Source: Macrostomum hystrix (taxonomy: Eukaryota; Animalia; Platyhelminthes). From it: a DNA stretch of 64,000 bases. The stretch covers positions 124,001 to 188,000 of the forward strand of contig CATNEN010000006.1 of assembly GCA_950097015.1 (NCBI GenBank), read 5' to 3'. Both the position numbers and the translations under genes were made by a program. The notes under the pieces are model-generated. The model did no database searches and was not told where the DNA came from. It saw nothing but the letters and a program-made list of their open reading frames with translations. Positions 5,065 to 62,692 of the stretch are shown here, in pieces. The first letter of the stretch is position 1, and each line of letters begins with the position of its first letter.

Positions 5065-5737
5065 TGCCTGTAATTCAAAGCCTAATACCTGTAATTCAAA
5101 GCCTAATACCTGTAATTCAAAACCTAATACCTGTAATTCAAAACCTAATACCTGTAATTCAAAGCCTAATACCTGTAATTCAAAGCCTAATATCTGTAAT
5201 TCAAAGCCTAATACCTGTAATTCAAAACCTAATACCTGTAATTCAAAGCCTAATACCTGTAATTCAAAGCCCAATACCTGTAATTCAAAGCCTAATACCT
5301 GTAATTCAAAACCTAATACCTGTAATTCAAAGCCTAATACCTGTAATTCAAAGCCTAATACCTGTAATTCAAAGCCTAATACCTGTAATTCAAAACCTAA
5401 TACCTGTAATTCAAAACCTAATACCTGTAATTCAAAGCCTAATACCTGTAATTCAAAGCCAAATACCTGTAATTCAAAGCCTAATACCTGTAATTCAAAA
5501 CCTAATACCTGTAATTCAAAGCCTAATACCTGTAATTCAAAGCCTAATACCTGTAATTCAAAACCTAATACCTGTAATTCAAAACCTAATACCTGTAATT
5601 CAAAGCCTAATACCTGTAATTCAAAGCCTAATATCTGTAATTCAAAGCCTAATACCTGTAATTCAAAACCTAATACCTGTAATTCAAAGCCTAATACCTG
5701 TAATTCAAAGCCCAATACCTGTAATTCAAAGCCTAAT
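5065..5737. repeat. 21-bp minisatellite (CCTAATACCTGTAATTCAAAG), left part, interrupted by the Polinton
   Basis: About 32 units; the array resumes at 21423. Confidence 0.97.
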
Positions 5738-6429
5738 AGTAGTATGCAAGAGGGGGCTTCTAGGACAAAAATAATCGCAGCCTCCATTATCCACAAACCA
5801 TTACTTTTATTATTCCCGAAGAGATCAGGAAAAAAAGGGTCCCCGCCCCTCTAAAAACTCCGTCTCCATATTCTAAATTCTCTACTTTTAATATCCCACA
5901 TCAGTTTGTAAGTTGAATATCTAGGACAAAAAATTATCGCAGCCTCCTTATTGCACAAACCATTACCTTTCCTGAAGGAACAAGGTTCCCCCGCCAAAAA
6001 AAAAATACTTTCCAGTTTCTGAACTTGGACAAAACAAATTATCGCAGCCACTCCCTAAGAGATCATGCACAAAATAGCGAAGCTGCAAAAAGCGTGCCAA
6101 GACAATCAAATTAGCACTAAAATCCCATTCCCCAAACTCAAGACCCCAAACCTAGGGTGCTCATCCTCCGAAAAAAAAATTATATTCTCATTAAAAATGC
6201 TCCCAATCGTCTCTCCAGGATCTTATTACAAAAGTCATGAGCCTAATTACAAGAGTAAGTACCAATGCAAACGAGAATGCAGCGAGTACATGAAGAAATA
6301 TTGTCCCAACGTCGATATCAATGTCCCTAATATTAATCTAGCTCTCCAAAGTCACTGGTTTCATAAGTATGGAGCAATTATAAAGGACTACGACAGCTAC
6401 TATAACTTTGCAGAAATCATTAAGCAGCT
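5738..6429 (+). repeat. Left terminal inverted repeat of the Polinton (692 bp)
   Basis: Reverse complement of 20731-21422. The only differences I found are two homopolymer lengths (A10 vs A11; A9 vs A8). Confidence 0.95.
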
Positions 6430-6445
6430 TACATTCTCTCAATGA
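6197..6445 (+). CDS. Small TIR-encoded ORF, left copy (82 aa, MLPIVSPGSYYKSHEPNY...), unknown function
   Basis: ATG in the TTAAAAATG context shared by the element's genes; identical to the right copy except that it reads through into TFSQ*. Confidence 0.45.
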   Translation: MLPIVSPGSYYKSHEPNYKSKYQCKRECSEYMKKYCPNVDINVPNINLALQSHWFHKYGAIIKDYDSYYNFAEIIKQLTFSQ

Positions 6446-7274
6446 TCAACGTCAATACAAACTCTTCACCGTTGAAATCAACGCCAACACCATCTTCCGT
6501 CTCAAACTGCAGCACAATCTCGTGAATCTCCTTATTACTTAGCACAACTCTTTTCACTGGATTTGGTTTCTCTACCAGCATCTGTCCTCCAGCAACAGAG
6601 TTTGAGATGTTGTACAAAATATTCGTTCGCTTTCCCTTAAACACCCAATCACGACTGAGATTACTTCTGATTAGTATATTCAAACCCTTTACAATGTCTG
6701 CGATATTGGGTGCTAAGAACAAGCCGCTTAGCAGGGTCCTTGAAACTGCCTCCGGTGATGCAGTCTGTGCTTCCGCCTTATAAACTTTCTTCTCGAATCC
6801 CAATTCCCTATACCATGTGTCATCTTTAAATTCAACCTCAGCATCTTTGTGAACTTGCATGACCACTCTCATTACAGTGAGATCATAGGATAGTTTGACA
6901 GGGAACAGTTTCTTCTCTGGCTTGCTCTCATTGGGTGTTTCAAAATGGCCTCTTTTAGTAAAAACACTTTCTAGAAAGTAATTGTAGGTATCCACACTTT
7001 GCGTGCTCACAGGGAATACCACAGCTTCTGCTGCTGCACCTCTCCATTTGTAATGAAACTTATTATTTGCTGCTGTCACATTGGGAACGTTTGACCAACC
7101 AGTGAAGTCGTTAAGATATACATGGTAATTAGCACCTGGATCCAGATGAATCGCCTGCTCTAATTTTTCAACAAATATCCCGTTTGAGTCATTAATTCGC
7201 CCAGCTATTGTAATAGGAATGCTCTCCTTAGAGTGAGAAATAATATTATTTAGTCTTTCAGCAATCGCTTCCAT
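6429..7274 (-). CDS. Polinton minor capsid protein (penton-like, single jelly roll)
   Basis: 281 aa; YHVYLNDFTGWSNVPNVTAANNKF and C-terminal IHEIVLQFETEDGVGVDFNGEEFVLTLII match Polinton penton patterns as I recall them; adjacent to the MCP gene. Confidence 0.8.
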   Translation of the reverse strand: MEAIAERLNNIISHSKESIPITIAGRINDSNGIFVEKLEQAIHLDPGANYHVYLNDFTGWSNVPNVTAANNKFHYKWRGAAAEAVVFPVSTQSVDTYNYFLESVFTKRGHFETPNESKPEKKLFPVKLSYDLTVMRVVMQVHKDAEVEFKDDTWYRELGFEKKVYKAEAQTASPEAVSRTLLSGLFLAPNIADIVKGLNILIRSNLSRDWVFKGKRTNILYNISNSVAGGQMLVEKPNPVKRVVLSNKEIHEIVLQFETEDGVGVDFNGEEFVLTLIIERM

Positions 7275-7297
7275 TTTTCAGCCCCGAAAAAAAATAT

Positions 7298-8584
7298 TTA
7301 AACTTTACTGGATGAATTGTTGATCATGTTAAGCTTCACCTTCCTCTCGAACGCATAGATAATGTACAGGTCAACAGCAGTTGCGGCAGTCCTCTCAATG
7401 TTAGTCACGATATTCACAGGGCTGTTATCAGTAGGCATTTGTCTGGCAGACACATCAGCGCCAAACATCGGATAAAGAGTTCCATATTGAAGAGCAGTGA
7501 TAGCAATTCCATTGTTCTCTTTCACAGCCAAGTCGACCAACTCGCTGTAAAATTTGCTAATCTTGTTCTGACTGAAATTTCCATTTTGTGGCAGTGCGGG
7601 GTAAAGATTATCACTGATTTCATGCTGAATGGACCGCACGTCTCCATGCATGTAGCGTATAATGTTATTTGGGTTTCTCATGTTAATAATAATATACCTA
7701 GGATTGCTGCATGATCCCTCTTTAATGCAGATGTTTGTTCTGGTTTCGTTTCGCTCATCTCGACACATGTAGGCCGTGTAGGCGACATCAATGTCCTTCT
7801 CTATTGCCTTGAGATAATCTGCTTTTAGTGCGGTCTTTGGCTCAATGACTTCCAAATACAGCTCGATTCCGGTTAGCTTCACTTCCATCCTAGTGTGGTC
7901 CGCCCCAGTCCACAACACTCTACTGCGATCATCTCTAGTCATCTTAAAGGTGTAGCTGAAATTACTAGTCAGTCGATTAAATGTATTACAGAATCCACTC
8001 ATGAATCTCAGTGGTATGAATACATCAACAGACCGATACAGCGGGTTCTTGGCAGCATCATCAGCACCTTGCAATGCATAGTTGTATCTCTTCTTCCTCT
8101 TTTTATAGCCACTGTCATTGATATCTCCTTCTTTTTCATCTGCAATAAAACCTGCACCACTCCCCAACTGAATAAAATCTGGATTCTCGATCAAACAATG
8201 AGCGTCATAGACAATTCCAAAGTTGGCGATTCGCTCCAACTCTGTGCTCCCATTCGATACACTAAACTCCTTGAACATGTACGCCCAAAAGTTACTAATC
8301 AGAGCCACATCTGCATCATGCTTGTCAACGTTAGCATGAGCTGCATCCGCACCTCCCTTTGTCTTGAATTGAAATGTCATATGGAAGCCGCTCTTAAGAC
8401 TGTGCACACTAACCAGAGACGAACATCCATTGTAGGTGAATGTCAGTGTTTGACCAGGACCAAGATTAGTTTCATTCTGATTTTCCTGACTGGGAACTCT
8501 TACTTGAGTCGCTTTGATTGTGCTATCATCACTCAAAATAGGCTTGTTAATTTTGTAGAAAACTGGTGTCAGTGGGTCGTTCAT
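7298..8584 (-). CDS. Polinton major capsid protein (double jelly roll, hexon-like)
   Basis: 428 aa, beta-rich; N-terminal P..SDDST, NGSTELERIANFG, C-terminal DNLYPA...NF and YPMFGADVSARQ motifs fit Polinton MCPs; size and position also fit. Confidence 0.8.
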   Translation of the reverse strand: MNDPLTPVFYKINKPILSDDSTIKATQVRVPSQENQNETNLGPGQTLTFTYNGCSSLVSVHSLKSGFHMTFQFKTKGGADAAHANVDKHDADVALISNFWAYMFKEFSVSNGSTELERIANFGIVYDAHCLIENPDFIQLGSGAGFIADEKEGDINDSGYKKRKKRYNYALQGADDAAKNPLYRSVDVFIPLRFMSGFCNTFNRLTSNFSYTFKMTRDDRSRVLWTGADHTRMEVKLTGIELYLEVIEPKTALKADYLKAIEKDIDVAYTAYMCRDERNETRTNICIKEGSCSNPRYIIINMRNPNNIIRYMHGDVRSIQHEISDNLYPALPQNGNFSQNKISKFYSELVDLAVKENNGIAITALQYGTLYPMFGADVSARQMPTDNSPVNIVTNIERTAATAVDLYIIYAFERKVKLNMINNSSSKV

Positions 8585-8614
8585 TTTTTTAAACTAAAAA
8601 AAATAAAATAAAAA

Positions 8615-9801
8615 ATGAAGCGAAAAAATGCGCACCAAATATCTGAATTGGAGAAGCTAGCACAAGCAGAAAGAGAGTTACCGGGCTAATCAATAAGGAG
8701 CAACAATCCTACAATGAGTTTGTCCAAGCAGCCACAGAGTTTCATAAACCCGGGTATGGAGAAGCTAAGAAAAATATTGATCAAGTCAAAGAAACTATTG
8801 ACGACATACAGGAAACCCAGGTGCAAAAGGCTTTGGACAAAATTCCAGAAGCACCGCAGATACAGCAATCTGCAGATCCACAAGTCCAAGTCCCACAACA
8901 GTCACAACTAAAAGTGACAGATAACTTTTTTGGACCAGTAGAACGCGCAGAACATGATGGGAAATATGTATTTGGAATAAGCATGTGGAGAAAAAACATT
9001 TATAATGAACCAGTGGAATATTATATCGACATAAACAAGAACCATATTTCTGTTGTCAAAGGCTCAGAAACTAAGAGAATAATTTACACAGAAACCTTAC
9101 TGAATTTTATGACTAAGAACCAAGAGAAAATTTCGGACAAGCAGCTAAAGAACTATAGAGATCTTGTGAGTTTTGCTCTTGCAAGAGATATAGAAATACT
9201 AAAGGCCCCACAAATTCTGAAAATGATGCATGACAACGGTGTCATCCTGACTAGATTCAAAAAGTACAAGCATTTTAAACAATGGTTTGGTTTGCCAGAT
9301 CAAGAAGATGCCATAAAACATCTAGAACAGCAACCGCCCCAGCAGCAACCGCCCCAGCAGCAACCGCCCCAGCAGCAACCGCCACAGCAGCAACAAACAT
9401 CTGAATCAACACCCGAAGACGTACTCAGTGCCCTTGAAAATGCAGATCCGACTCAAGTAGCTAAATATAAAAATGATCACCCGGATGCCTGGCAACAACT
9501 AGAAAATTTCTCCCCAGCTCGAATGAATAAAATCAAGGCAAGAGTGTTCACACCACAACAAAGACCAGTTGAGAGTTCACCCCAGTCCTCCACCGACCAG
9601 TCCTCCACTGACCAATCATTTCAAGGAAAAGGAATTTCTGACATCTATAAGCGAGTGGCCGTTCTTCTTGGAGCTGCAAAGACTGGCATGAAAGACGAAA
9701 ATAGAAAAGAATTTGTCAACATCCTGGACAAAATGATGGAAAAGAAGTATATCGACAAACGGGCAAGAGAGCTTCTGCTTTCACGTTTTAACAAAAAATA
9801 A
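8615..9801 (+). CDS. Conserved Polinton ORF (PZ-like), probably about 395 aa, with one 1-nt frameshift at about 8685
   Basis: C-terminal GKGISDIYKRVAVLLGAAKTG...EFVNILDKMMEKKYI resembles the conserved Polinton PZ tail. The track's frame is open from 8647. An ATG at 8615 in AAAAATG context joins it if one G is added in CCGGGCTA. Confidence 0.6.
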
Positions 9802-9819
9802 TTTCTTCCCTAATAAAAA

Positions 9820-10221
9820 ATGCCGATTATTTTCGAAAAAGACGTGGACAAATACTATGACAAGGAGGAACTTAATCTAATTAAGCGTGGATCTGGACTT
9901 TTCCCAGCAGGTCACTATCCTAGGAAAGAACGCTCAGGGAATGGTCTTGCTGACATGATTGCACAGGGTGCTCAGATCTTTAAAGTCATTAGTGAGAACA
10001 AAGATAATATTAAGAACGTGGCTGAATCTGTGGGAAGTGTTGTCACTGCGGCTAAAAAGATAAAGGATACTGTAACACAAGATATTCAGCCCCCATTGGC
10101 TCCGCTGGCTCCGCTGGCTCCGCTGGCTCCTCTGGCCCCAAACCCAGACACTGTGGACCCTGCAATCTATGAGAAGATGAGAGCTAGCATTAAAAAAGGA
10201 AGTGGTTTCAAATTCGAATAG
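9820..10221 (+). CDS. Small Polinton protein with G-x-G motifs and an amphipathic helix (candidate virion core or membrane-lytic precursor)
   Basis: 133 aa; RGSG|LF, SGNG|LA, KGSG|FK motifs; amphipathic GLADMIAQGAQIFKVISENKDNIKNVAESVGSVV; (APL)5 repeat. Confidence 0.6.
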   Translation: MPIIFEKDVDKYYDKEELNLIKRGSGLFPAGHYPRKERSGNGLADMIAQGAQIFKVISENKDNIKNVAESVGSVVTAAKKIKDTVTQDIQPPLAPLAPLAPLAPLAPNPDTVDPAIYEKMRASIKKGSGFKFE

Positions 10222-10264
10222 GGTACTAGGGTACTTTCCGAGGGTACAAGACATGTAAGGGTAC

Positions 10265-10390
10265 AAGACTAGTCCCAAAAAGACACATCTAAGTCCCAAA
10301 TAGACACATCTAAGTCCCAAATAGACACATCTAAGTCCCAAAAAGACACATCTAAGTCCCAAATAGACACATCTAAGTCCTAGACACATC
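10265..10390. repeat. 21-bp tandem repeat (GACACATCTAAGTCCCAAATA), about 6 copies, in a Polinton intergenic spacer
   Basis: Periodicity is visible directly. Confidence 0.85.
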
Positions 10391-10436
10391 TTATAAATGA
10401 TTTACTCTTTTTTAATTTTTTTTTCATCATAGAAAA

Positions 10437-11237
10437 ATGGACTTTTCAAACGACTTCAATCCTCACTGGACACGTAATCAGATTAAGTTTTCTCATCATG
10501 AGTCAATCCCGAGTCACTTCAGATGCATTGTTGTTGGTTCGTCAGGTTCAGGTAAAACATTCAGAGTCTTTAACATGCTTCTTAGACCTGGCTTTATCGA
10601 CTATGACACTCTGCACATCTACTCTCCCACCCTGTATCAAGATGAGTATAAAATGTTGATCTCTGGACTGCAAAACAGACTGCACAAAGAGCACATTATT
10701 CAATGTTTTAATAACCAAAAGAGCCTTCCCAGTAACCCAGAAATTGTAGCTGCCGAATATGCAAAGTACATCAAAGACAATGAAAAATGGCAGAACATTA
10801 AAGTGTTCACATACGGAGATCCGCAGGTTGATCCTAAGACCAAACTTCTACCCCAACCAGATGAGCTAGAAAAGGGGAGAAAACATTTGATTGTCTTTGA
10901 TGATTGCATGACAGGCCCACAGAAGCAGATAGAAAACTATTTTACAAGAGGACGGCACAACAATTGTAACGTAATTTACATTGCCCAGAACTGGTTCGAG
11001 CTCCCGAACAAAACAATTCGTGGGAACTGCAATCTGATCCTCCTGTTTCCAACAATTCCACAGGACAGGCTAAAAAGATTTTACAATGAGGTCATTGCGC
11101 CTGCCAATTTTGTAAATCCAACAAAAAACTCCAACAGAAAGATTTCACAGGAGGAATTCGTTAATCTTTGCTATGACAAGTGGAATCAACCTTACCAGTT
11201 TGTGATGATCAACAAAGAAAAAAGAACTGTAATTTAA
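10437..11237 (+). CDS. A32/FtsK-like genome-packaging ATPase
   Basis: Walker A VVGSSGSGKT, Walker B LIVFDD, and FTRGRHNNCNVIYIAQ...IRGN motifs. Confidence 0.95.
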   Translation: MDFSNDFNPHWTRNQIKFSHHESIPSHFRCIVVGSSGSGKTFRVFNMLLRPGFIDYDTLHIYSPTLYQDEYKMLISGLQNRLHKEHIIQCFNNQKSLPSNPEIVAAEYAKYIKDNEKWQNIKVFTYGDPQVDPKTKLLPQPDELEKGRKHLIVFDDCMTGPQKQIENYFTRGRHNNCNVIYIAQNWFELPNKTIRGNCNLILLFPTIPQDRLKRFYNEVIAPANFVNPTKNSNRKISQEEFVNLCYDKWNQPYQFVMINKEKRTVI

Positions 11238-11254
11238 ATTTTGTTATTAAAAAA

Positions 11255-19765: not shown

Positions 19766-20431
19766 TCAAACAAGTTGCTTCCATAACTGATCATCCTCAA
19801 GGATTTCAACTAATATTGACATATTGGTGTTCAAATCACGAAGCGGCAGGGAGACTTGCCTAAGACCAGGGTATTCACTTTCCAGCTTGAACAACTTCAT
19901 ATAAAGATTTGCTGACGAAACCTTGAGGTTTACTTGATCAAGAAGGTAGTCAAAATGCTGCTTTCGTGCCTTCTTACCGCTGTTTTTATTACTGGCTTTA
20001 AATGTCAACAAGAGTTTTCCACATTGGATCGCATGATGCAGACCAGTCTTCTGCGACCTTCTCAGACGAAACAGAGCGCACTGCAGACGCTCTACCACAT
20101 CACCGCTTTCATCATCGGCAGGTTTCCCAACATCTGCTTGGGGAATTCGTGAAGCGAGGAGCTTCTGTTTGAAGTCTTCTTTGCGCTTAGCTCGCCGCTC
20201 TGCATCAAGCGCCGCCACGCGATCACTCGCGGCCTTCTTCTGCAGCCGCGTTAGAGTGAGGACTTCCATTTGCAGCGACTCTTCGTTGAGCTTGAAAAAT
20301 GCGGCGATCTTTTGTCGTTTCTGCGCAGCTCTAACTGGATCCTTGATTTCTGCTAAAGTCTCAGATAAGACCTCACATAGGCTCCGTTGCACTGTTTCGC
20401 CAGACAGGTTTATACACCAATCGACATCCAT
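19766..20431 (-). CDS. Accessory ORF (221 aa) with a DUF3102-like helical C-terminal domain, unknown function
   Basis: HAIQCGKLLLTFK...FDYLLDQVNLKVSSANLYMKLFKL recalls the DUF3102 pattern (AIEIGRRL.EAK...S.RTA..YM.L). Family call is from memory only. Confidence 0.5.
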   Translation of the reverse strand: MDVDWCINLSGETVQRSLCEVLSETLAEIKDPVRAAQKRQKIAAFFKLNEESLQMEVLTLTRLQKKAASDRVAALDAERRAKRKEDFKQKLLASRIPQADVGKPADDESGDVVERLQCALFRLRRSQKTGLHHAIQCGKLLLTFKASNKNSGKKARKQHFDYLLDQVNLKVSSANLYMKLFKLESEYPGLRQVSLPLRDLNTNMSILVEILEDDQLWKQLV

Positions 20432-24594: not shown

Positions 24595-27500
24595 TCACTG
24601 CGGCAACGTCTTCAGGACGTTGTGCACCTCCTCAGCGATAGCCGATACAACGAACTCAAACTGGTCCTGTTATGAATGAAGTGAAAGGTTTACAGTAACA
24701 TGCCTGCTGTGCTGAGTGAGGATTGCTGTGCTGAATGAGGATTGCTGTGCTGAATGAGGATTGCTGTGCTGAATGAGGATTGCTGTGCTGAATGAGGATT
24801 GCAGTGCTGAATGAGGATTGCTGTGCCGAATGAGGATTGCTGTGCTGAGTGAGGATTGCTGTGCTGAATGAGGATTGCTGTGCTGAATGAGGATTGCAGT
24901 GCTGAATGAGGGAGGTTACAGTACTGAATGAGGGAGGTTGCAGTACTGAATGAGGGAGGTTGCAGTACTGAATGAGGAAGATTGTAGTACTGAATGAGGA
25001 GATTGTAGTACTGAATGAGGGAGATTGCAGTACTGAATGAGGGAGATTGCAGTACTGAATGAGGGAGATTGCAGTACTGAATTAGGAGGTTGCAGTACTG
25101 AATGAGGAGATTGCAGTACTGAATGAGGGAGGTTGCAGTACTGAATGAGGGAGGTTGCAGTACTGAATGAGGGAGATTGCAGTACTGAATAAGGAGGTTG
25201 CAGTGCTGAATGAGGAGGTTGTAGTACTGAATGAGGAGGTTGTAGTACTGAATGAGGAGGTTGTAGTACTGAATTAGGAGGTGGCAGTACTGAATGAGGG
25301 AGATTGCAGTACTGAATGAGGGAGATTGCAGTACTGAATGAGGGAGATTGCAGTACTGAATGAGGGAGATTGCAGTACTGAATGAGGGAGATTGCAGTAC
25401 TGAATGAGGGAGATTGCAGTACTGAATGAGGGAGATTGCAGTACTGAATTAGGAGGTTGCAGTACTGAATGAGGAGATTGCAGTACTGAATGAGGGAGAT
25501 TGCAGTACTGAATGAGGAGGTTGCAGTGCTGAATGAGGAGATTGTAGTACTGAATGAGGGAGGTTGTAGTACTGAATGAGGAGGTTGTAGTACTGAATGA
25601 GGAGGTTGTAGTACTGAATGAGGGAGGTTGTACTACTGATTGTGAGTGTAAATGTCTTAAAGTACTTCGCAGGCTCACCCGAGTCTTCACCAGTCCAGGC
25701 CTTTGATCCCGCAGGTGTTCGAGGCTGGCGGCCAGGTCGATCTCCTTGACGCCCTTGGCGATGCGGGCGAGTGCAAGGTCCAGCAGGCAGTAGGTGCCTG
25801 AACGGCCGCAGCCGTCGCTGCAGTGAATCACCAGAGGCGAGGTGCGGCCTTTGAAGGACTTGTTCACCTTGCTGCGGGTGTGACAGGCGGTGGATGAGTC
25901 TATCAGCGAAAAAATATAATAATGAAAAAATAGAGTTAAAAATGTGAATATTACAGTAACCATGGATCAACTGGGATAAACCTGAGTCATCCGGGGATAA
26001 ACCTGGGTCAACTGGATTAAACCAGGATCAACTAGGATAAAACTGGGCCAACTAGGATAAACCTGGGTCAACTAGGATAAACCTGGGTCATCCGGGGATA
26101 AACCTGGGTCATCCGGTGATAAACCTGGGTCAACTGGGATAAACCTGGGTCAACTAGGATAACTGGGTCAACTGGGATAAACCTGGGTCATCCGGGGATA
26201 AACCTGGATCAACTGGGATAAACCTGGGTCAACTAGGATAAACCTGGGTCAACTGGAATAAACCTGGGTCATCCGGGGATGAACCTGGGTCAGCCATCTC
26301 ACCGACGGAAGTCCAGCAGAGCCTTGGCACTGCGCGGCAGGCCGGCCTCCTCCCAGGTGAGGAAGTGAAACATGGTGACGGTGCGCGCCTCGCCACTGTC
26401 CAAATTCTTCAGGTAGAAGTTGCGCACCAGAAAGTCTTCGAACCAGACGTGCTCGGAAACCAGGTGGACCTGGGTTGTAGCAAACAAGGGAAATCTGTGA
26501 ACAGGGGATATCTGTGAACAGCGAAATCTGTGAACGGGGGAAATCTGTGAACGGGGGACATCTATGAACAGGGGAAATCTGTGAGCAGGGGAAATCTGTG
26601 AACAAGGGACATTTATGAACAGGGGAAATCTGTGAACAAGGGAAATCTGTGAACATGGGAAATCTGTGAGCAGGGGAAATCTGTGAACAAGGGACATTTA
26701 TGAAGAGGGGAAATCTGTGAACAGATGAAATCTGTGAACGGGGGAAATCTGTGAACGGGGGAAATCTGTGAACAGGGGAAATCAGTGCACAGGGGAAATC
26801 TGTGAACAAGGGAAATCTGTGAACAAGGGAAATCTGTGAACGGGGAACATCTGTGAACAGGGGAAATCTGTGAGCAGGGAAAATCTGTGAACAAGGGAAA
26901 TCTGTGAACAAGGGAAATCTGTGAACGGGGGACATCTGTGAACAAGGGAAATCTGTGAACAAGGGAAATCTGTGAACAGGGGAAATCTGTGAACAAGGGA
27001 AATCTTTGAACAAGGGAAATCTGTGAACAAGGGAAATCTGTGAACAAGGGAAATCTGTGAACAGGGGAAATCTGTGAACAAGGGAAATCTGTGAACGGGG
27101 GAAATCTGTGAACAAGGGAGATCTGTGAACAGGGAGATCTGTGAACAAGGGACATCTGTGAACAAGGGAAATCTGTGAAAAAGGGAGATCTGTGAACAAG
27201 GGACATCTGTGAACAGGGGAAATCTGTGAAAGGAGGAGTATATAAAATATTGAATCCTGTAGCACATAATCTAATAAAGCGGTGTTGAATCGCACCTCAA
27301 ACCTGTTGAACAGCTTGGAGCCCTCAGCCGGCCAGTACATGACGCTCTGTTCATTAGCGCCAACACTGGCCAGGTTCACGATCGTCACGGAGCAGCACTC
27401 CCACAGCATCTGCCAGAAGTCGGCAGCTGTTGAATCCGTGGGTCCCTGGGCCAGGATGTAGGCCTTAACCCTCGGGTCGGAGTCGTAGATGTAGCTGGCG

Positions 27501-29046
27501 TTGATGTAGTCTCCGCCAGTTGCGTTCAGTTCGCGCTTCAGTATCACCCGTGAATGGTCGTCTGCGCCCGAAAATGACAATAGAAGCCTTTTTAAGAGCT
27601 ACTGACAGTAGTTAAGGAAGATTACCAACCTAATTCTTGCATTCTTGGGTTAGCAAGAAAAATTAAACAATTAGTTGTCGCTATGCTCACAGACCCAGTG
27701 TAGTTAACCAAATTGAAAATCACAGATTATACGAGTAAAAATGACCCTAAAAACGTTTCACTCACACGGCAGAAGGTCCTGGAATCGATTCTTGGCCGCA
27801 TTCTCCGGGGTAGCGCCAGCGATAGATGAGCTCTGTTCGGCCTCGTATGAGCACAGATCGGCCCATTCCTGCTCAAGCTTCTCCTTGCTACTCAGATAGT
27901 TCTCCATGTAACTCTGGGTTCGGCGGTGTGTGGGATCTCGTCTGTTCATGTGTGGGATCTCGTCTGTTCATGTGTGGGATCTCGTCTGTTCATGTGTGGG
28001 ATCTCGTTTGTTCATGTGTGGGATATTGTCTGTTCATGTGTGGGATCCCGTCTGTTCATGTGTGGGATCTCGTCTGTTCATGTGTGGGATCTCGTCTGTT
28101 CATGTGTGGGATCTCGTCTGTTCATGTGTGGGATCTCGTTTGTTCATGTGTGGGATATTGTCTGTTCATGTGTGGGATCCCGTCTGTTCATGTGTGGGAT
28201 CTCGTCTGTTCATGTGTGGGATCTCGTCTGTTCATGTGTGGGATCTCGTCTGTTCATGGGTGGGATCTCTTCTGTTCATGTGTGGGATATCGTCTGTTCA
28301 TGTGTGGGATCTCGTCTGTTCATGTGTGGGATCTCGACTGTTCATGTGTGGGATCTCGTCTGTTCATGTGTGGGATCTCGTCTGTTCATGGGTGGGATCT
28401 CTTCTGTTCATGTGTGGGATATCGTCTGTTCATGTGTGGGATCTCGACTGTTCATGTGTGGGATCTCGTCTGTTCATGTGTGGGATCTCGTCTGTTCATG
28501 GGTGGGATCTCTTCTGTTCATGTGTGGGATATCGTCTGTTCATGTGTGGGATCTCGTCTGTTCATGTGTGGGATATCGTCTGTTCATGTGTGGGATCTTG
28601 TCTGTTCATGTGTGGGATCTCGTCTGTTCATGGGTGGGATCTCTTCTGTTCATGTGTGGGATATCGTCTGTTCATGTGTGGGATCTTGTCTGTTCATGTG
28701 TGGGATCTCGTCTGTTCATGGGTGGGATCTCTTCTGTTCATGTGTGGGATCTTGTCTGTTCATGTGTGGGATCTCGTCTGTTCATGGGTGGGATCTCTTC
28801 TGTTCATGTGTGGGATATCGTCTGTTCATGTGTGGGATCTCGTCTGTTCATGTGTGGGATCTCGTCTGTTCATGTGTGGGATCTCGTCTGTTCATGTGTG
28901 GGATCTCGTCTGTTCATGTGTGGGATCCCGTCTGTTCATGTGTGGGATTTCGTGGGCATTGGTGGGCACAATTGGCAACCAGAGGACTCACCAGAATGAG
29001 GTGTCCAGTAGTAATATCCATGTCAGTTGTGATTGGGTCATCACTC
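24595..29046 (-). pseudogene. PTPRN: Duplicated 3' half of the IA-2/PTPRN gene (exons 10-15, no promoter or 5' exons of its own)
   Basis: Exons 28992-29046, 27766-27913, 27296-27561, 26303-26469, 25679-25871 and 24595-24666 are identical to the proximal copy. Confidence 0.8.
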
Positions 29047-31793
29047 CTGTTCAATTGTGGAGAAGGTCAATTGATAAGTCTTTGAGAAAAATGTGCGAAA
29101 AAGTGTTAATTAAAATAATCAGACACTTCATTAACACTCGTAGAGAGCCCTCATCTGTTAGACAGAGCCCTCATCTGTTAGACCGAGTCCTCACCTGTTA
29201 GACAGAGCCCTCATCTGTTAGACAGAGCCCTCATCTGTTAGACAGAGCCCTCATCTGTTGGACAGAGCCCTCACCTGTTAGACAGAGCCCTCATCTGTTA
29301 GACAGAGCCCTCATCTGTTAGACAGAGCCCTCATCTGTTAGACAGAGCCCTCATCTGTTAGACAGAGCCCTCTTCTGTTAGACAGAGCCCTCACCTGTTA
29401 GACAGAGCCCTCTTCTGTTAGACAGAGCCCTCATCTGTTAGACCGAGTCCTCACGTGTTAGACAGAGCCCTCTTCTGTTAGACAGAGCCCTCATCTGTTA
29501 GACAGAGCCCTCACCTGTTAGACAGAGCCCTCACCTGTTAGACAGAGCCCTCACCTGTTAGACAGAGCCCTCATCTGTTAAACAGAGCAATGAAATTCAG
29601 TTACAAGGACAATTTTGACACAAAGTCAAATAAAACATTCACAAGAACTGTCATTTTTGCGATGAAGGTTGTGACAGAACACAAAAAGCATCACACAGGA
29701 TATGCTCAGCTGATTAATTAACTTTTTATTTTTTCGTACGTCTAAAACTTATTCCGCTAAAAGTACACAGATATGGGTTTAAATATATATTCAAAATATA
29801 AGCGATTAGAATGTAACGGAAATATTATCCAATAAAATTTGGTGAACAAAAAAGTATTATTCATAATTTTGCATTTATGAAAACAAAGCACAAAAAAATT
29901 CTGTGGTGTTAAAAATAAATATTTGCTTGTCGTGTTACTATTCGGACAAAATCGGATAATCCACTAAATGTCAAGGATCAAAAGTATTGCACGACATGAA
30001 GTATTTAAAATGTAATTTCTAATAATTTCTAATATTAAGAAATAATAAATAACTAAATTCTGAACAAACAGACTAGACTAGAAAACTAATTCAAAGCAGG
30101 CTGCAGGATAATACTCGTATTTTCAAATTGTGATAAGAAAATACATAAAAAGACCAGCTTGTCTTCATTAATAGACTGTGACTGTATATTATATAATATT
30201 AAATTAGAAAATATTCTCTAGTTTTCGTTTGGAGGTGGACTCGTTGCACTGATGACTCATCAATCTGCTAGCATTGAATCTCTCCCCGTGAATGTACAAG
30301 TGTACACTGATGACTCATCAATCTGCTAGCATTGAATCTCTCCCCGTGAATGTACAAGTGTACACTGATGACTCATCAATCTGCTAGCATTGAATCTCTC
30401 CCCGTGAATGTACAAGTGTACACTGATGACTCATCAATCTGCTAGCATTGAATCTCTCCCCGTGAATGTACAAGTGTACACTGATGACTCATCAATCTGC
30501 TAGCATTGAATCTCTGTCCGTGAATGTACAAGTGTACACTGATGACTCATCAATCTGCTAGCATTGAATCTCTCCCCGTGAATGTACAAGTATACACTGA
30601 TGACTCATCAATCGGCTAGCATTGAACCTCTCCCCGTGAATGTACAAGTGTACACTGATGACTCATCAATCTGCTAGCATTGAATCTCTCCCCGTGAATG
30701 TACAAGTATACACTGATGACTCATCAATCTGCTAGCATTGAACCTCTCCCCGTGAATGTACAAGTGTACACTGATGACTCATCAATCTGCTAGCATTGAA
30801 TCTCTGTCCGTGAATGTACAAGTGTACACTGATGACTCATCAATCTGCTAGCATTGAATCTCTGTCCGTGAATGTACAAGTGTACACTGATGACTCATCA
30901 ATCTGCTAGCATTGAATCTCTCCCCGTGAATGTACAAGTGTACACTGATGACTCATCAATCTGCTAGCATTGAATCTCTCCCCGTGAATGTACAAGTGTA
31001 CACTGATGACTCATCAATCTGCTAGCATTGAACCTCTCCCCGTGAATGTACAAGTGTACACTGATGACTCATCAATCTGCTAGCATTGAATCTCTCCCCG
31101 TGAATGTACAAGTGTACACTGATGACTCATCAATCTGCTAGCATTGAATCTCTCCCCGTGAATGTACAAGTGTACACTGATGACTCATCAATCTGCTAGC
31201 ATTGAATCTCTCCCCGTGAATGTACAAGTGTACACTGATGACTCATCAATCTGCTAGCATTGAATCTCTCCCCGTGAATGTACAAGTGTACACTGATGAC
31301 TCATCAATCTGCTAGCATTAAATCTCTGTCCGTGAATGTACACTCATGTCTCATGGCTAATGTCGAAACCATTGTCAACAAATTTGCTTTGATGAATCAG
31401 TGAAGTAAAGTTTTAGTTAACGTTATTATCAGTTTCACAACGAAAAATAAGAAATAATGATATAATTGTCGGTGGTTATGCAAAAGCAAACGAGACAAAT
31501 GCACGACAAATATTTGACGAAAAGCTTTTACGATTAATCGCTTTAGCGACGAAAAAAATGTTTCTTGAAATACAATTTTAACGTTTCGCTACGACATGAT
31601 AAGCATTGAGTGTATAACAAGCTGCAGAAACTAGAAACTGACAGAGATAAACATGTTTGTTATAATATACGAGCCATATCAGTTCCACTTTCCAACACAA
31701 AAATAGCATCGAATGACCAACGAACTCATCTTTAAACTGAAAAAGAAAATTTAAAACAGACTTGCAATTTTCTCTTAAAAACCCTCTTGAAGG

Positions 31794-48264
<16,471 letters not shown>

Positions 48265-50785: not shown

Positions 50786-53584
50786 CTATTTTCTTAAAAA
50801 ACCGGAAACCTGTACATGATCTTGCAGTCGGCGAGCATTGTTCTGCGCCCCGGATTCAGCGTGATAGTTGCCAATGAATGATCCCTCCTCACCATACTCA
50901 CCTGAAAGTTAGTAAACCAAGGAAGCAACTAAGTACTTTTAGACATTCTTGACGGGTTTCAGACATTCGAGGAACTCACGATAGTCGATCACATCCACGG
51001 CGCACTGAGCAGAACTCTCGCTAGAGAGGCCGCTGACCGGAGAGAGCCTGTGTCCAGGCTGGTCAGGCTCCCAGACTCCGTCCAGCCTGTCGGGCTGCCG
51101 ATATTCGCTGAACACCTCGGCGCGCGCCTCCGCCTGCGGATCATAGCCCCACCGGAGCTCTTGTTTGGCCACCTGGTAGGTTCGCCCAACCTGCCTGGTT
51201 GCCACGCGGATGCCGACTGCCAAGCATGCCAGCAGCAGCAGCGTGAGGACGACCGCAGCGACGACCTGCGCGCTTGCGCCTGCCAGATTCTGCTGTGAAG
51301 CTGCCTCCGGTGGCTGCCGAATGGACACCGTAAGGTTCTTCAGCTGGCCTGTGATGTCGAAATCGGTCGAATAGAAACAGCGGGTATCCCGGAGACAGTC
51401 CTGAGCCAGCATCCGACTGCCAGACAGCGACTGTGGCTTCTGAATCTGCAGGCTGCCCATAGCGGCTAAGGATCTGTACCGCAGGTTGAACACGGGGGTA
51501 AGACTGCGACCTTGAGTCAGCTGCGATCTGCAGGATGGCTGTATCCAGAGGACCACGCGGCCTCGATCGTTGTCAGTCTCCAGTGCGCAGCTGACGTTAT
51601 CTCGGAACAGAGCCGAGCTAGGCAGCAGTGTTCTGGAGTCCAGTCTGAGGGAGACTAGGATTTCGACGCCGATCTTGGTCAGGAAGTTGGAGAACTGATC
51701 ACTCAGACGGAATTCAAATCTCGTGCCGTTGTTTAAGTCGCATCGCTTGGAGTAGCAATCGCTATCGTCTTTGACTACAAAGTCTTCCATCGTAGGCCTT
51801 GGAATGAATACAATTTCACTTCCCTGACTTCCGACAGAGTAATCAGATGCACCGAGCAGCTGCGACTCTGTTGAATTTACTGAAGCCGTACATTCAAAGC
51901 GGTGACTAAAGTTTGTTCCAAGCACGGGATGCGAAGGTGGAACTCGGGTTATATTAATTGACAAGCTTCTCGAATAACTGACGGCTAATGTGGTCAGGTG
52001 CATCCAGTTGTCTATGGCGGAAGCCTGCTGACGAAATTCCTTATCAGACAATGCGACCCAGTTGGATTTATCCCCACTAGCGAGTAGCATGTAAAACACC
52101 GGTGTGATAGTTACGGAATTCAGTCCTGAGAATGTCACTGTACAGTTATAAGCCATAGATTCGCCTTCTATGGCGTACACTCTGTGAGGCAGCAGACCTG
52201 AAGTCGCAGATTCCAAGACGGAAGCCTGTGGAAAGCGGGGCATCGAGATTACTGCGACTTCAAACTCGAAAAACTTTGACCCGGCCTCGCATCTGTAGAT
52301 GCCATTGTGCACATCAGACACAGATGACGTGAATTCGATCATGTTACCAGTTCTGAATATTCGCAAATCATCCACAAGACTCCACTCGTCCAGATGAGCT
52401 GGGATAAGCGGCTTTCCGTCGCGATAAAATCGATAGACCTCGCTTTTATCGCTGCAAATGATTGGGCACACAAGGGCGGTGTTGTCCATGCCCGACATCA
52501 CAGTCACCTTTCTCTGAAGATTTGGCACGACCTCGCATTCGCGAGATGCCGCAGTGCCATTGCAGCCCCGGTAAAAAACTTCTTCTAGGGGAATACGCAC
52601 CCTGACCGGACCCGTGCTCACGTAGGGCTCAGAGTCGCCCGTCACCGATGCGATGGTGCAGATGCCGATGGAAAACTGAGGCATGCATTCTTCATAGAAC
52701 AGCTTCACTTCCCTGCTGAGACCGCAGTTTGAGAACCACAGCTTGCCGTCTCTCAGATTTAGGTGCAACAGTTTGGCGCGGTTTCTGTGCATTGAGTCCA
52801 TCTTTGAATGGTAATTAACAAAGAGAATCGAATTGCTGAGCTGATAAGTAATGCACGACGAAGAATCAAAATACAGAATCATTCCCAGGTTGAGCTTCGC
52901 TTTCAGAAACCCCGGCGCTGACTCAATAGCTGCAACAATCTCATGTCTTAAAAAGTCGACTCTAGCAAAGCTATCATCATACGAGTAGCGAGTAATATTA
53001 GTGGCGAAGCTAACAGCACTGTCAGTGAGAAATCCTGGCGTGAAGCTGCGCCCAGAAGCAGACGATGACACCGCCGTCACCGGGTCCAGGTTCCAGATCC
53101 GCAGAGGCTTGGACTCCAGCCGGCCAGTGGAAAACTTCACTCTAACTAGCAGCTCCAGGCTCTCAGTGATGGCGTCCTTCTGTGACAGTTCTGACTGGCC
53201 GATGTGCAAGCTGAAATCCTCAGCTTCCTTTAAGCTCGATGAGATTATGAATGGCAGGCTGCCTGCACAGCGCACCGCCGTCTCAGAAGCCGCAGTGCCA
53301 ACCGAGCCCAGATCCACAACACCCGCTAATGCTGACTTCGGACACCGGAAGCTGAGCAGCCTTCTTAGACCGAGGCCTGTGTCTCCGGCAATGCGAAGCC
53401 TCAGTCCAATCTTCGTGCCCTTCCTGAGCACAGCGATCGCGCCCGAGTCACCGACCTCCCAGACTTCGTCCCAATTTAGGAGTAGCTTGGCAGACCCACT
53501 GCAGTTGAAGTACGGAGCCTGAGACCAGTTCACCGCCAGATGGACCGTGCTCAGCAGCAGCATGAGCAGAAACTGGTTGTGCAT
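50786..53584 (-). CDS. Type I membrane Ig-domain receptor with L1CAM/neuroglian-type cytoplasmic tail; two exons (53584-50980, 50901-50786), about 906 aa
   Basis: Signal peptide; Ig motifs ALVC...FYRDG...NGIYRCEA and EGESMAYNC...FECTAS; TM VVAAVVLTLLLLACLAVGI; tail TYQVAKQELRWGYDP...FSEYRQP. Donor C|GTGAGT (50979), branch TACTAAC, acceptor TTTCAG (50902); exon 2 encodes EYGEEGSFIGNY. Confidence 0.8.
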
Positions 53585-54766: not shown

Positions 54767-55081
54767 ATGGTCATGACAATTGATCTACTACTTCTGGTCG
54801 CTCAGCTGACACCGCAACTCGGGGCAACAACAGCAGCCTGTCCGAACAGAGATTACATCCCGGTGTGCGGCGCAGATGGCTTAACGCATCCGAGTCGTTG
54901 CTGGGCGGAGTCGGCCGGCGTACCGGTGGTCAGCGAGGGCGTCTGTCCGGGCTCGCAGCGTCGCTGCACGCGCCAGCTGGCCCCGGTGTGCGGTGCCAAC
55001 GGCTTTGTCTATCCGAACGTGTGCATTGCAGAGGCAGACCAGGTGCGAGTGCTGCGAGACGGATTTTGCGACGAATTTTAA
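54767..55081 (+). CDS. Secreted two-domain Kazal-type serine protease inhibitor
   Basis: Hydrophobic N-terminus; CPNRDYIPVCGADGLTHPSRC...EGVC and CTRQLAPVCGANGFVYPNVC...DGFC. Confidence 0.88.
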   Translation: MVMTIDLLLLVAQLTPQLGATTAACPNRDYIPVCGADGLTHPSRCWAESAGVPVVSEGVCPGSQRRCTRQLAPVCGANGFVYPNVCIAEADQVRVLRDGFCDEF

Positions 55082-57149: not shown

Positions 57150-58772
57150 TATAGCATTTTGCGAGCTATTGCAGACTACGAGCAAGCAATTTAATCCCAG
57201 AGAGCAAAAACACACGCATTTCGAGCCTCGATGCTAGCTGTCTATGGTAAAAAGTGTATCAAACCGGCAGGCAATTTAATCCATCGAGCACTCATTTAGG
57301 CACTGAAGCCCACAAACAGCGCTGTCTATGATGTTCCTCTCTCCGTTTTTCATCATGTCAGACGAAAGTGACCAAGCCAGCACCATTTTTGAAGACATCG
57401 ACGGAATCGCTGCCGAAGATGACGGAGCGCCACCTGTGCAATATGCAAAGATTAGCGACGAAAAGCATAAATTGATAATCGACGCAATCGACAGAGGCGA
57501 TAACAACAGAAGCATTGCGCGCTGGCTAAATGTAAAGGCCAAGACCGTTGCTAGCATTCGAAGACGGTACGAAATTACTGGCCGCAGTGAACGGCTGCGA
57601 CGTGGCGGTGACCATTCGTCGAAGATGGCATTGGAACATGTCCAGGCGCTGCTGATAGCACTGGACCAGAATTCTCTCTTGACTTTGAAAGAGATGCAGC
57701 GTATTTTACTGGATCAGTTTCCTGGAGTGCAAGTGAGTGAAGCAACCGTGAGTCATTCTCTGGACAAGCAGCTGATTACGTCAAAGTGCCTCGGTCGCGA
57801 TCCTGATGTCCCGGAAACAATAAAAAATCCAGCCAACATAGCGCGCAGGCAAGAATTCGCACAGTGGTTGACAGGCCTACCGATGGATTGCCGGCTGGTG
57901 TATGTGGACGAAACGGGATTCAACATTTGGACCTGTCGGTCATTTGGACGGAGCAGACGAGGTCAGCGAGTTCGCCGAGTTCTACACACACAGCGAGGTG
58001 TGCAAGTAAATGTAATTCAAGCTACTTCTTTTGACATGGGCCTGGTCAATCATAAAAACCACAGCAATGGAATCATCTATGGGCAGTGGTACATCGTGAT
58101 GGACGGACCCCGGTTCCACAATGCGGCCAGAATTCCGGCCCAGTTCGCGACAAACTGGCACATCGTGGTTTTGCCTCCCTATTCACTATTCTTGAATCCT
58201 GTAGAATGCGCGCATTCATGCCTGAAGGCAGCCATCAAGAGGGAGTTGGCCCGACCAGCTGTGCAACTGGAACTGGACACTCCGCCTCCGGAAACTACGC
58301 TACGTGACTGGCGTGTCCTGGTGCTGTAGAGACTTTCCGAGGAAGCGACGGCAGAGATCACACTTGTGAAGTGCGGCGGCTGGTTCAGGCAGATGCTGCA
58401 CTATGTTCCGCGCTGCATCGCTGGGGAGGTGATTATGTAACTTTCTGAAGTCTGAACTTATCTAAAAACCTTTCTGTGTGTTTCTTTCTATGCTGCAAGG
58501 TTTCGTTAAGTGAATTTGTTAACTTCTACTGTATCTTGTTCTTATTTTATCACATGGAGCTTCCAGGTTGATTCGGTTGGAGGCATGCATCAAATAAATT
58601 GAAATGCTGAGCGCGATAGTGCTTAAATGAGTGCTCGATGGATTAAATTGCCTGCCGGTTTGATACACTTTTTACCATAGACAGCTAGCATCGAGGCTCG
58701 AAATGCGTGTGTTTTTGCTCTCTGGGATTAAATTGCTTGCTCGTAGTCTGCAATAGCTTGCAAAATGCTATA
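57150..58772 (+). mobile_element. Tc1/IS630-superfamily DNA transposon with 155-bp TIRs and TA flanks
   Basis: TIRs 57150-57304 and 58618-58772, including the TA, with 2 mismatches; internal transposase ORF. Confidence 0.92.
57328..58440 (+). pseudogene. Tc1/IS630-type DDE transposase, inactivated by a premature TAG at 58327-58329
   Basis: HTH region SIARWLNVKAKTVASIRRRY; YVDETGF (D), IVMDG (D), LNPVE (E). The frame continues after the TAG as RLSEEATAEITLVKCGGWFRQMLHYVPRCIAGEVIM*. Confidence 0.85.
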
Positions 58773-60141: not shown

Positions 60142-62692
60142 TCATGCAACAACCAGCGCTGGGGCGTCCTCGACATCGGCTGCGCCAGCCCTGATGTAAT
60201 CCTTGAAGGCCTCCTCCCTGGCCTCGGCTCTGGGGTTATGACCAACGCGGAGCTCATTCTCCTCAACTAGGTAGGCGCGCTCCAGAGACCTAGTCATTAT
60301 GTACACAGCTACCAAGGCTACCAGTACAGCGACCGCTGCTGCGATGGCGACACCAGCGATTGTCCCCATGGCTAAGCCAGTTTCCTTCGAGGGCAGTGGC
60401 ACAACCAGGAAGTTCAGTCCCACCCTGAGGAAGTCGAGACCGCTGGCCAAATCAAACTCAGTCGAGTAGAAGCAAAACGGGTCAGACCGGCAGTCCATAG
60501 TGCCAGCAGCAATGCTTGGAATACCGTAAGCTGACTTATTGTGCTGGAGATTACTCATCACTTTGCTGTTCGGGTAACTCAGCTTGAACACGGCTGTCAG
60601 ATTCTTCCGTTTCTGCAGCTCGTCTAGCACACTCTGGCTCGATATTGGCCGTATTAGATAAGATAAAGTTGCGCTCTTTGTATCGAAATGGAACATGGAC
60701 GCATAATCAACAAACAGAGGCTTGACGTCGGTAAGAAGTAGGTCATCCAGCATAAAGTAGGCAGAAATCTCGACGCCCAAATCCCTCAAGTAGGCGGCAG
60801 TGTCTTTGGATAGAGAGAATTTAAAGTTGGCGCCATTAATTACGCCACAGTTCTGAACGGAGCAGTTATTGTTCGGATTGATGACGAAGCTCTCTCGTGT
60901 TAAACGCTTTAAAAATATGACGTCGGTGCCAGTTTGAGTTCGATATTCCGACATGCCTACTAGCGCAGATTCGACCGAATCAACAGACGCATTGCACACA
61001 AACCGGTGGCTGAAGTTTGTGTGCAGTGATGGATTCACTGGCGGCACGCGGACCACATTCACTGATAAAGTTTTTTGGGGCCCAGCAGTTGTTGTTGTAA
61101 TACTCATCCACTTGTCGGTAGCTAATAACTTCTGACGAAATTCTTCGCTGGTAAGACCAGCCCAGTTAGTCCGACTACCACTCGGCAAGTGCATGTAGAA
61201 CATGGGAGACACTGTCACAGAGCTCAGTCCCCGAATCTAGCCGTGCAGTTATAGATCAATGACTCGCCCTCCATCGCGAACACTTTTTCAGGCAGCAGAC
61301 CGGAAGCCGCAGAGCCTGAGCTGCTTCCGCTCATGGAAGACGCATTCGTGGTAAATTGCGGCATTGAAATTACTGTCACATTAAACTGGAACGACTTTGA
61401 ACCAGCTTCACACCTGTAGGGGCCCGAGTGCTCATCTGATACGGAGTGGTAAACTCTATAATATTGCCAGTTTTGTACACCCGAATACCTTTGATCAGAG
61501 TCCATTCTTCGGAAGCGAGCAATAAGTTGTCCGCCTCGAAAGAATCGGTACGCCTGGCTCTTGTCGTCGCAGAGAATGGGACAGACAAGCGCAGTGGTGT
61601 CCATGCCTGATATGATAGTCACATTGCCATTGGCATTTCTTGCCACTTCACAGCGTCTCAAATGCATAGAGTATGCAGGGTATTTAACATGGTCAACCGG
61701 AAAACGTTCATCAACAGCCTGAATACTATCATAGGGCTCGGACTTTCCGGAGAGTGACATGAGGGTGCAGATGCCTATTGTGCTTTGCGGTTTCGCTTTA
61801 TTGTAGAGCAAAGCAATTTCGTGCTTCAGTCCGGAGGCAGAAAATTCAAAATAGCCACTTTCTATGTCTAGATGCATCAGCTTCTGCAGATTCTGAAGGC
61901 GGAAGTCAAACTTCGAATAGTAGCTTACAAACAGAATGGCCTCGCCAGGCGGGCTGTACAGACAGGAGCCGGCATTGAAATACAATTTGGCGCCCATTGT
62001 GATTTTGCTTTTGAAAAAACCGAGGTGACGATTTAACAATCTGCGAAAACCGTAGGCTCAATAAAGAGAACCGATGGAAACGGACCGTCTTGTGAATAGT
62101 TCAGCTTCGTCATTAGTTCAATAGCAGCCGGGGTGAGAAATTTTCTTTGCAAGGCGCCTATCGAACCAGCATTGAATAAACTCAAGGGATCTAGGTTGTA
62201 CAGAAAAAGAGGATTTGACTGAATCGAGCCGCCAGCCCATTCAACGCGCACCCTCAGCTTCACATTCCTATTGGCCACTTCGTCGTATGGAATAGACGAA
62301 ACGCCCATTTTTAGCTCGAATTTGCCCTCGACTGTGACACTCGACTGTACGGTAAACGGAATAGAACCTGGGCACCGAACCACGGACGAACCAGTGAGCT
62401 GTGTGCTCAAATCAACCTCTTCAGACCGTCCGTCAAGCGGGCACTCGTACATTAGAATCGTTTTCAGAGGGCTACCGACGACACCGCTTACTGACACATT
62501 GATATAGATGATCTTGTCCTTGGTCAGTATAGAAAGCACGCTGGACGATCCGGCTTCCCAGGTGTCGCTCCAGAACAGAAGCACCTTGTGGTTAGGAGAG
62601 AAGTCGAAGCGAGGCATCCGCTGGGCCGCGACGCCGATGATGCAGCCGCTGCCAAGGCCGATTAGCAGAGCCAATAGCACAGAGGACCTCAT
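60142..62692 (-). pseudogene. Second paralog of the Ig-domain L1-tailed receptor, split by four small deletions (pseudogene or assembly errors); about 851 aa if restored
   Basis: Three track ORFs (62033-62692, 61224-62039, 60142-61218) plus a side frame (61376-61588) align colinearly with the 50786-53584 protein. Frame breaks at about 62040, 61523, 61449 and 61230. Confidence 0.85.

Follow-up and report, generated by a model that had tools for sequence, protein, structure and literature searches.

The window analysed here, a stretch of 64,000 nucleotides from the flatworm Macrostomum hystrix (C6:124001-188000 in the 220-Mb, 42-contig genome G000), carries on its minus strand, at 50786-53584, a gene for a type I membrane protein that is built from two exons. 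The gene belongs to a tandemly arrayed family of more than 20 paralogs with orthologous subfamilies in Macrostomum lignano, and it joins an ectodomain of predicted immunoglobulin-like (Ig-like) domains to a cytoplasmic tail of the kind found in the L1/neuroglian adhesion molecules.

Gene model and splice junction

On the minus strand, an open reading frame (ORF) of 881 codons extends over 53584-50939 and ends ...VIDYREFLECLKPVKNV. Exon 1 (50980-53584) runs from the start codon to the splice donor, covers residues 1-868 and the first base of codon 869, and encodes a signal peptide, five predicted Ig-like domains (D1-D5), a stalk, a transmembrane helix and the membrane-proximal part of the cytoplasmic tail. 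The signal peptide (53519-53584, residues ~1-22) is predicted from a hydrophobic N-terminus, by inspection, and coincides with a low-confidence model helix at residues 4-13; the transmembrane helix (51209-51265, residues ~774-792) was likewise recognised by inspection, as a hydrophobic stretch in the translation. The part of the tail that lies in exon 1 (50980-51208, residues 793-868) is marked by the sequence GRTYQV...EVFSEYRQP.

Exon 1 is followed by a phase-1 intron of 78 nucleotides (50902-50979) with a GTGAGT donor at 50979-50974, a TACTAAC branch-point sequence at 50914-50908 and a TTTCAG acceptor at 50907-50902. Exon 2 (50786-50901) consists of 37 codons and a TAG stop at 50788-50786, and encodes the ankyrin-binding-type motif and a short C-terminus. 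Splicing would exchange the last 12 residues of the ORF for 37 residues starting EYGEEGSFIGNY, with the junction R re-formed; the predicted product reads ...VIDY-R-EYGEEGSFIGNYHAES...FLRK before its stop, and EEGSFIGNY (50890-50864) is in frame once the exons are joined.

The position and phase of this intron recur in three other paralog lineages (L003, L010 and L011), where the donor at the homologous place reads GTGAGT or GTAAGA, the acceptor is rich in pyrimidines and introns of 76, 168 and 622 nucleotides, respectively, each lead to an exon encoding E-x-G-S-F-[IL]-G-x-Y. In M. lignano, the annotated C-termini of the gene models P0001, P0002 and P0005 contain exactly these joined sequences. 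The alignment of L003 with its ortholog P0005 (74% identical) reaches ...DDIDF, the predicted donor, beyond which P0005 carries on with the sequence of the downstream exon of L003. Furthermore, when the whole genome was scanned for sites that code for E-[DEQH]-G-S-F-x-G-x-Y, seven were found, against none for the reversed control, and all seven lie directly 3' of receptor-family members. The conservation of the predicted junction is thus more than chance, and these comparisons of sequence demonstrate a two-exon structure in which the FIGxY motif occupies a separate 3' exon. A hidden SFIGNY exon behind a 78-nucleotide intron had been proposed in an earlier, sequence-only reading of the window, and the window sequence, the paralog introns and the M. 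lignano models bear out both its coordinates and its interpretation. For annotation this carries a warning, as a model that ends the ORF at its first stop conceals the functional motif.

Cytoplasmic tail and gene family

Members of the family in both species pass the Pfam model Bravo_FIGEY (PF13882, cut-off 23.8 bits). The M. lignano proteins P0001, P0002 and P0005 reach 60.9, 56.7 and 37.4 bits (E 2.7e-16, 5.8e-15 and 5.9e-9), and a six-frame search of the M. hystrix genome places three further paralogs, two on contig C30 and one on C14, above the cut-off. Some M. lignano members have been annotated automatically as Bravo_FIGEY, Neurofascin/L1/NrCAM C-terminal or Ig-like domain-containing; no paper on this family was found in the literature.

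The window gene itself gave no Pfam match to Bravo_FIGEY at E values up to 10 when the exon-1 protein, the exon-1 tail and the exon-2 peptide were searched separately, so the homology of its tail to the L1 type is transitive only, through P0001. With the whole window protein as query, P0001 and P0002 match at E ~1e-140; the exon-1 tail finds the Bravo_FIGEY region of P0001 (BLASTP, E 7e-7), and over the FIGxY segment exon 2 matches both P0001 (FIGGY, E 1e-3) and the metagenome protein P0004 (FIGQY, E 2e-3). A word search with the P0002 tail returned no named L1, its only matches being one metagenome protein and three from Macrostomum. With family members passing the Bravo_FIGEY model in M. lignano and in three paralogs of the same genome, the profile and pairwise matches demonstrate that the tail of the family is homologous, by descent, to that of the L1 family, as the L1/neuroglian-type tail of the sequence-only reading had implied.

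In L1, neurofascin and neuroglian, adhesion takes place through a horseshoe of Ig domains, and the unphosphorylated FIGxY motif recruits ankyrin and spectrin. By analogy with neurofascin and neuroglian, the SFIGNY tyrosine motif encoded in exon 2 may, when not phosphorylated, recruit ankyrin and hence the spectrin skeleton. Coupling to ankyrin in this way would be expected for only a minority of the family. The FIGxY exon is kept in only seven paralogs, and no FIGxY-type coding site lies elsewhere in the genome; most paralogs lack it and would therefore be expected to adhere or signal without ankyrin. Outside the receptor family, the six-frame search of the whole genome gave no Bravo_FIGEY match, even at E values up to 10, and no canonical L1 gene was detectable within the limits of the six-frame and pattern searches.

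In a quick maximum-likelihood tree the family falls into several subfamilies, all of which include M. lignano orthologs. A branch of 1.06 substitutions per site leads to the window gene and a near-identical twin on contig C24 (C24:7082654-7085374), for which there is no M. lignano ortholog. The membrane-proximal tail of the window copy is degraded. The copy might on these grounds be a drifting or non-functional duplicate in which the exon-2 junction is unused and any protein ends ...KPVKNV without ankyrin coupling, an idea to which a tail too diverged for Pfam, the lack of FIGxY in most paralogs and five single-nucleotide indels in the neighbouring paralog of the window lend some weight, together with a branch-point A placed just 7 nucleotides before the acceptor AG. 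The 881-codon frame is, however, intact in both near-identical copies, which differ at 9 synonymous and 6 nonsynonymous sites (a ratio of nonsynonymous to synonymous rates, dN/dS, of roughly 0.2), and between their second exons there is one difference, which is synonymous. The consensus donor and acceptor, the frame and SFIGNY have all been kept, as have all invariant residues of the family, the Ig cysteines included. Although the events are few, this pattern suggests an intact copy under purifying selection, and loss of function is considered very unlikely.

The window gene is part of an array on C6 (the window gene, a broken copy, and copies at C6:193k, 203k and 221k) that mirrors an array on C24 (7082k, 7092k, 7101k and 7111k). 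Identity between the two is 99.4-99.8% in the two pairs compared, and similarity stops upstream about 165 nucleotides before the ATG; the arrays are explained either by a haplotig or by segmental duplication in the very recent past. The broken copy, a second family paralog at 60142-62692 on the minus strand of the window, has a tail type without the FIGxY exon. It shares 99.8% identity with L004, the intact copy on C24, but five single-base indels (near 62049, 62013, 61532, 61446 and 61233) distribute it over at least three frames, either because the copy was broken very recently or because of indel errors in the assembly.

More distant relatives of 533-723 amino acids, namely P0009-P0012 of M. 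lignano and L017 (C38:6266000-6270500), are shorter and share D1-D2(-D3) with the family at E 1e-25 to 1e-58. Pfam detected no tail in them, so the N-terminal module also exists in other contexts.

Ectodomain and origin of the family

The AlphaFold model of residues 1-755 (predicted local distance difference test score, pLDDT, 79.3; predicted template modelling score, pTM, 0.76) comprises five beta-sandwich domains, all encoded on the minus strand. D1 (53075-53515, residues ~24-170) is modelled as an enlarged Ig-like domain in which W42 and C81 are invariant and C106 is present in 10 of 11 sequences, and D2 (52580-53032, residues ~185-335) as an Ig-like sandwich with five inserted helices, whose invariant cysteines C244 and C309 stand 65 residues apart. 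D3 (52235-52537, residues ~350-450), the one Ig domain that sequence alone reveals, has the F strand GIYRCEAG and the cysteines C373/C432, and is the most conserved of the five (49% mean identity between subfamilies). D4 (51794-52192, residues ~465-597), Ig-like with inserts and with the invariant pair C481/C565, closes a predicted horseshoe. The cysteine pairs of D2, D3 and D4 are all invariant and have Ig-like spacing. D5 (51320-51793, residues ~598-755), a fifth beta-sandwich with two helices that ends in the conserved CFYSTDFD motif, is probably Ig-like too, and is the least certain domain, being modelled only within residues 1-755.

Sequence searches detect little of this architecture. 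The sole Pfam Ig match in the window protein is a sub-threshold one to Ig_2 (residues 354-435, 20.6 bits against a cut-off of 27, E 5e-4), and no Ig domain scores above the curated threshold; the two Ig domains initially reported as recognisable were a generous count. A profile of 11 paralogs (A1) found only a marginal obscurin Ig match, over the F-G strands, among PDB sequences. In an exhaustive search of 1.84 billion representatives the same profile produced 29 matches, the 12 best being family members; all 11 of these that were checked come from M. lignano, and a further match is the ENA fragment P0016. The remaining matches, where shown, are mostly giant multi-repeat proteins, aligned mainly at positions ~414-450, that is, over the F-G strands of the D3 Ig domain. 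In hhalign comparisons of the family profile with P0004 and with a canonical adhesion molecule encoded on contig C25, only the Ig-Ig junction across D3-D4 was aligned. Among the 1.84 billion representatives, the ectodomain would therefore appear to be known by sequence only from Macrostomum. The proposal of a lineage-specific family stands at the level of sequence, since every nameable ectodomain relative is an M. lignano protein and fragment P0016 also matches.

The predicted structures, in turn, place the ectodomain among known multi-Ig adhesion molecules. The best Foldseek matches of the model are contactin-1/2, Dscam, sidekick, neurofascin-155 Ig1-6, DCC, axonin-1 and hemolin (E 1e-12 to 8e-17), and residues ~20-595 superpose on the complete Ig1-4 horseshoes of hemolin, axonin-1 and the contactins, the best whole-module superpositions being those on 1bih, 1cs6, 3jxa and 5e4i (360-374 residues aligned, root-mean-square deviation (rmsd) 5.2-5.5). 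Residues 349-755 align with NCAM Ig1-2-3 over 270/288 residues (rmsd 4.6). In the same comparison table the extended three-Ig chain 6efz gives an rmsd of 32, so the horseshoe fit reflects the predicted U-shape. Modelled alone on a 21-sequence alignment (A2), the N-terminal 350 amino acids reach a pLDDT of 89 and a pTM of 0.87, and the resulting D1+D2 model matches Ig domains and also tandem pairs of them, among these hemolin Ig1-2 (Foldseek E 2e-6). An ESM Atlas match for residues 20-345 (Methyltransf_FA, 0.81) had a chance-level score and was disregarded.

The ectodomain is thus predicted to consist of five Ig-like domains, the first four forming a U-shaped horseshoe as in L1, the contactins and hemolin, with large inserts predicted in D1, D2 and D4. 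By analogy with these molecules, the horseshoe may mediate homophilic or heterophilic binding at the cell surface. The novel ectodomain and new recognition surface that had been suggested for the gene are not supported, as the stretches of about 350 and about 170 amino acids left unassigned at that time model as Ig-like domains; missing Pfam domains in an ectodomain do not imply a new fold.

FN3 domains form a point of difference from the L1 layout. No fn3 match was found by Pfam in the window protein, whereas the canonical adhesion molecule of the same genome does yield fn3 matches, so fn3 detection works here; moreover, D5 ends at ~755 and the transmembrane helix begins at ~774, and the ~18 residues between them leave no room for an FN3 domain. 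An ordinary, merely diverged Ig/FN3 ectodomain with clear orthologs, which the sequence-only reading had named as the opposite case, is right as regards diverged Ig domains, but FN3 domains and orthologs outside the genus were both missing from the searches described.

A retroposed origin, with the one-exon ectodomain taken as special, had also been suggested and is not upheld. The canonical adhesion molecule mentioned above (contig C25, locus L025, 1696000-1705999; 4247-7942, minus strand) is an Ig(x5)+FN3 protein encoded in one 1231-codon frame, with a transmembrane helix, a weak match to the C-terminal FN3 of DSCAM and no FIGQY tail; long single-exon ectodomains are therefore usual in this genome. 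Some C14 paralogs carry an additional ectodomain intron, and conservation of the tail intron argues against a simple retrocopy. Retroposition was rejected on these three grounds. The C25 adhesion gene is followed by an ORF of threonine/serine/proline-rich repeats.

Altogether, this multi-copy family, known by sequence only from Macrostomum, is probably a strongly remodelled descendant of the L1/neuroglian class. Descent from an ancestral L1/neuroglian gene is the simplest account because all Bravo_FIGEY matches in the genome and the seven FIGxY sites lie in the family. The gene is best described as a truncated, fast-evolving variant of the L1 kind; it does not have the status of a canonical member, because six Ig domains and FN3 domains were looked for and not found.

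Several observations weigh against such a descent. FN3 domains number zero and Ig-like domains only five; no piece of the window gene matches Bravo_FIGEY in Pfam, the exon-1 tail has no match to the tail of P0004, a non-Macrostomum Bravo_FIGEY protein, and the spacing between branch point and acceptor is unusually short. D1, D2 and D5 are Ig-like by predicted structure only, with middling Z scores of 6-7.5 for D1-D2 alone, and the alignments behind the models are shallow (11 and 21 sequences). In addition, the horseshoe is a predicted inter-domain arrangement and, being shared with Dscam, sidekick and DCC, does not on its own point to L1.

A rival account, similar to what the sequence-only reading had proposed, is domain shuffling, in which a non-L1 ectodomain, either from another horseshoe member of the immunoglobulin superfamily or from a module born in the lineage, gained L1 transmembrane and tail exons, making the family chimeric. 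In its favour, no sequence similarity to any L1 ectodomain was detected for D1, D2 or D5, the profile search having returned Macrostomum proteins and generic Ig F-G strands; Dscam, sidekick, DCC and the contactins share the horseshoe and score as well as neurofascin; and D1-D2-like modules are also present in P0009-P0012, the shorter M. lignano proteins, in which no tail is recognisable. Nevertheless, the genome contains no detectable second L1-type gene as a possible source of the tail. The intron, moreover, is situated within the tail and not at the boundary between ectodomain and tail, with the transmembrane helix and the ectodomain on one exon, and the combination of a horseshoe with an L1 tail is most simply attributed to common descent. 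A chimeric origin is accordingly rated unlikely, and descent from the L1/neuroglian class is preferred.

Under this preferred descent, the family documents how far a near-fixed L1 layout can drift: FN3 domains have been lost, Ig domains inflated past recognition by sequence, the gene multiplied and ankyrin coupling repeatedly lost, while the logic of horseshoe and tail has been retained. Since their tails either have or lack FIGxY while the scaffold is the same, the paralogs also form a natural series in which the contribution of ankyrin coupling could be tested. A bolder proposal, conceivable though doubtful, is that the canonical L1/neuroglian gene is gone in Macrostomum and that this FN3-less, five-Ig, two-exon family comprises its only descendants, the L1 scaffold having been turned into a diversifying recognition repertoire. 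More than 20 fast-diverging tandem copies, only about seven of them coupling to ankyrin, would then perhaps serve tissue, self/non-self or mating-related recognition instead of conserved neural adhesion.

Neighbouring elements and comparison with known systems

A small ORF with two Kazal-type protease-inhibitor domains (Pfam Kazal_1, E 1.7e-13) lies immediately upstream of the receptor gene on the opposite strand (54767-55081, plus strand), and between the two receptor paralogs of the window an ORF at 57328-58329 (plus strand) has DDE_3 transposase and helix-turn-helix domains of the Tc1/mariner-like kind. Further away, a cluster of long ORFs at ~5000-20400, with a weak double-jelly-roll capsid-like match at 7298-8584 and a 1266-amino-acid ORF (13092-16892) with a sub-threshold Endonuclease VII motif (23.3 against 23.6 bits), resembles a large mobile or virus-like element that has become integrated. 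At 25274-29201 and 32473-36400 lies a tandem duplication (about 7.2 kb) whose two copies have the same set of ORFs, and the one copy scanned contains a partial protein-tyrosine-phosphatase match at 26252-27580 (Y_phosphatase, E 1.7e-19).

Few bilaterian adhesion receptors are as conserved as the L1-family molecules, whose layout of six Ig domains, FN3 domains and an ankyrin-binding tail is nearly fixed. Unlike vertebrate L1CAM, neurofascin, NrCAM and CHL1, Drosophila neuroglian and C. elegans SAX-7/LAD-1, the Macrostomum gene has five Ig-like domains in place of six and no FN3 domains (three to five in the L1 family); its predicted D1, D2 and D4 are enlarged by helical and loop inserts, and the ectodomain is unrecognisable by sequence save for one Ig domain. 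It further differs from the L1 family in having two exons and more than 20 fast-diverging copies, most of them without FIGxY. Like these molecules, it encodes a type I membrane protein with a tail assignable, through P0001, to the Bravo_FIGEY type, in which the juxtamembrane G-x-x-Y-x-V and F-x-E-Y-x-x-P motifs and a C-terminal ankyrin-binding-type E-x-G-S-F-I-G-x-Y are found, and its four N-terminal Ig-like domains are predicted as a horseshoe.

Hemolin and the contactins, including axonin-1, provide the best whole-module structural superpositions with the predicted Macrostomum ectodomain. Hemolin is secreted, however, and the contactins are anchored by glycosylphosphatidylinositol and have FN3 domains; unlike the Macrostomum gene, none of them combines a transmembrane helix with an L1 tail. 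The metagenome protein P0004 (560 amino acids) differs from the Macrostomum family in its ordinary Pfam I-set/Ig_3 domains, in an ectodomain with only weak similarity at the Ig-Ig junction, and in a model that is probably truncated at the N-terminus. It likewise has an FN3-less layout of Ig domains, transmembrane helix and L1 tail, with the Ig domains directly before the membrane; its tail is 39% identical to that of M. lignano P0002, and its FIGQY segment matches exon 2 of the window gene.

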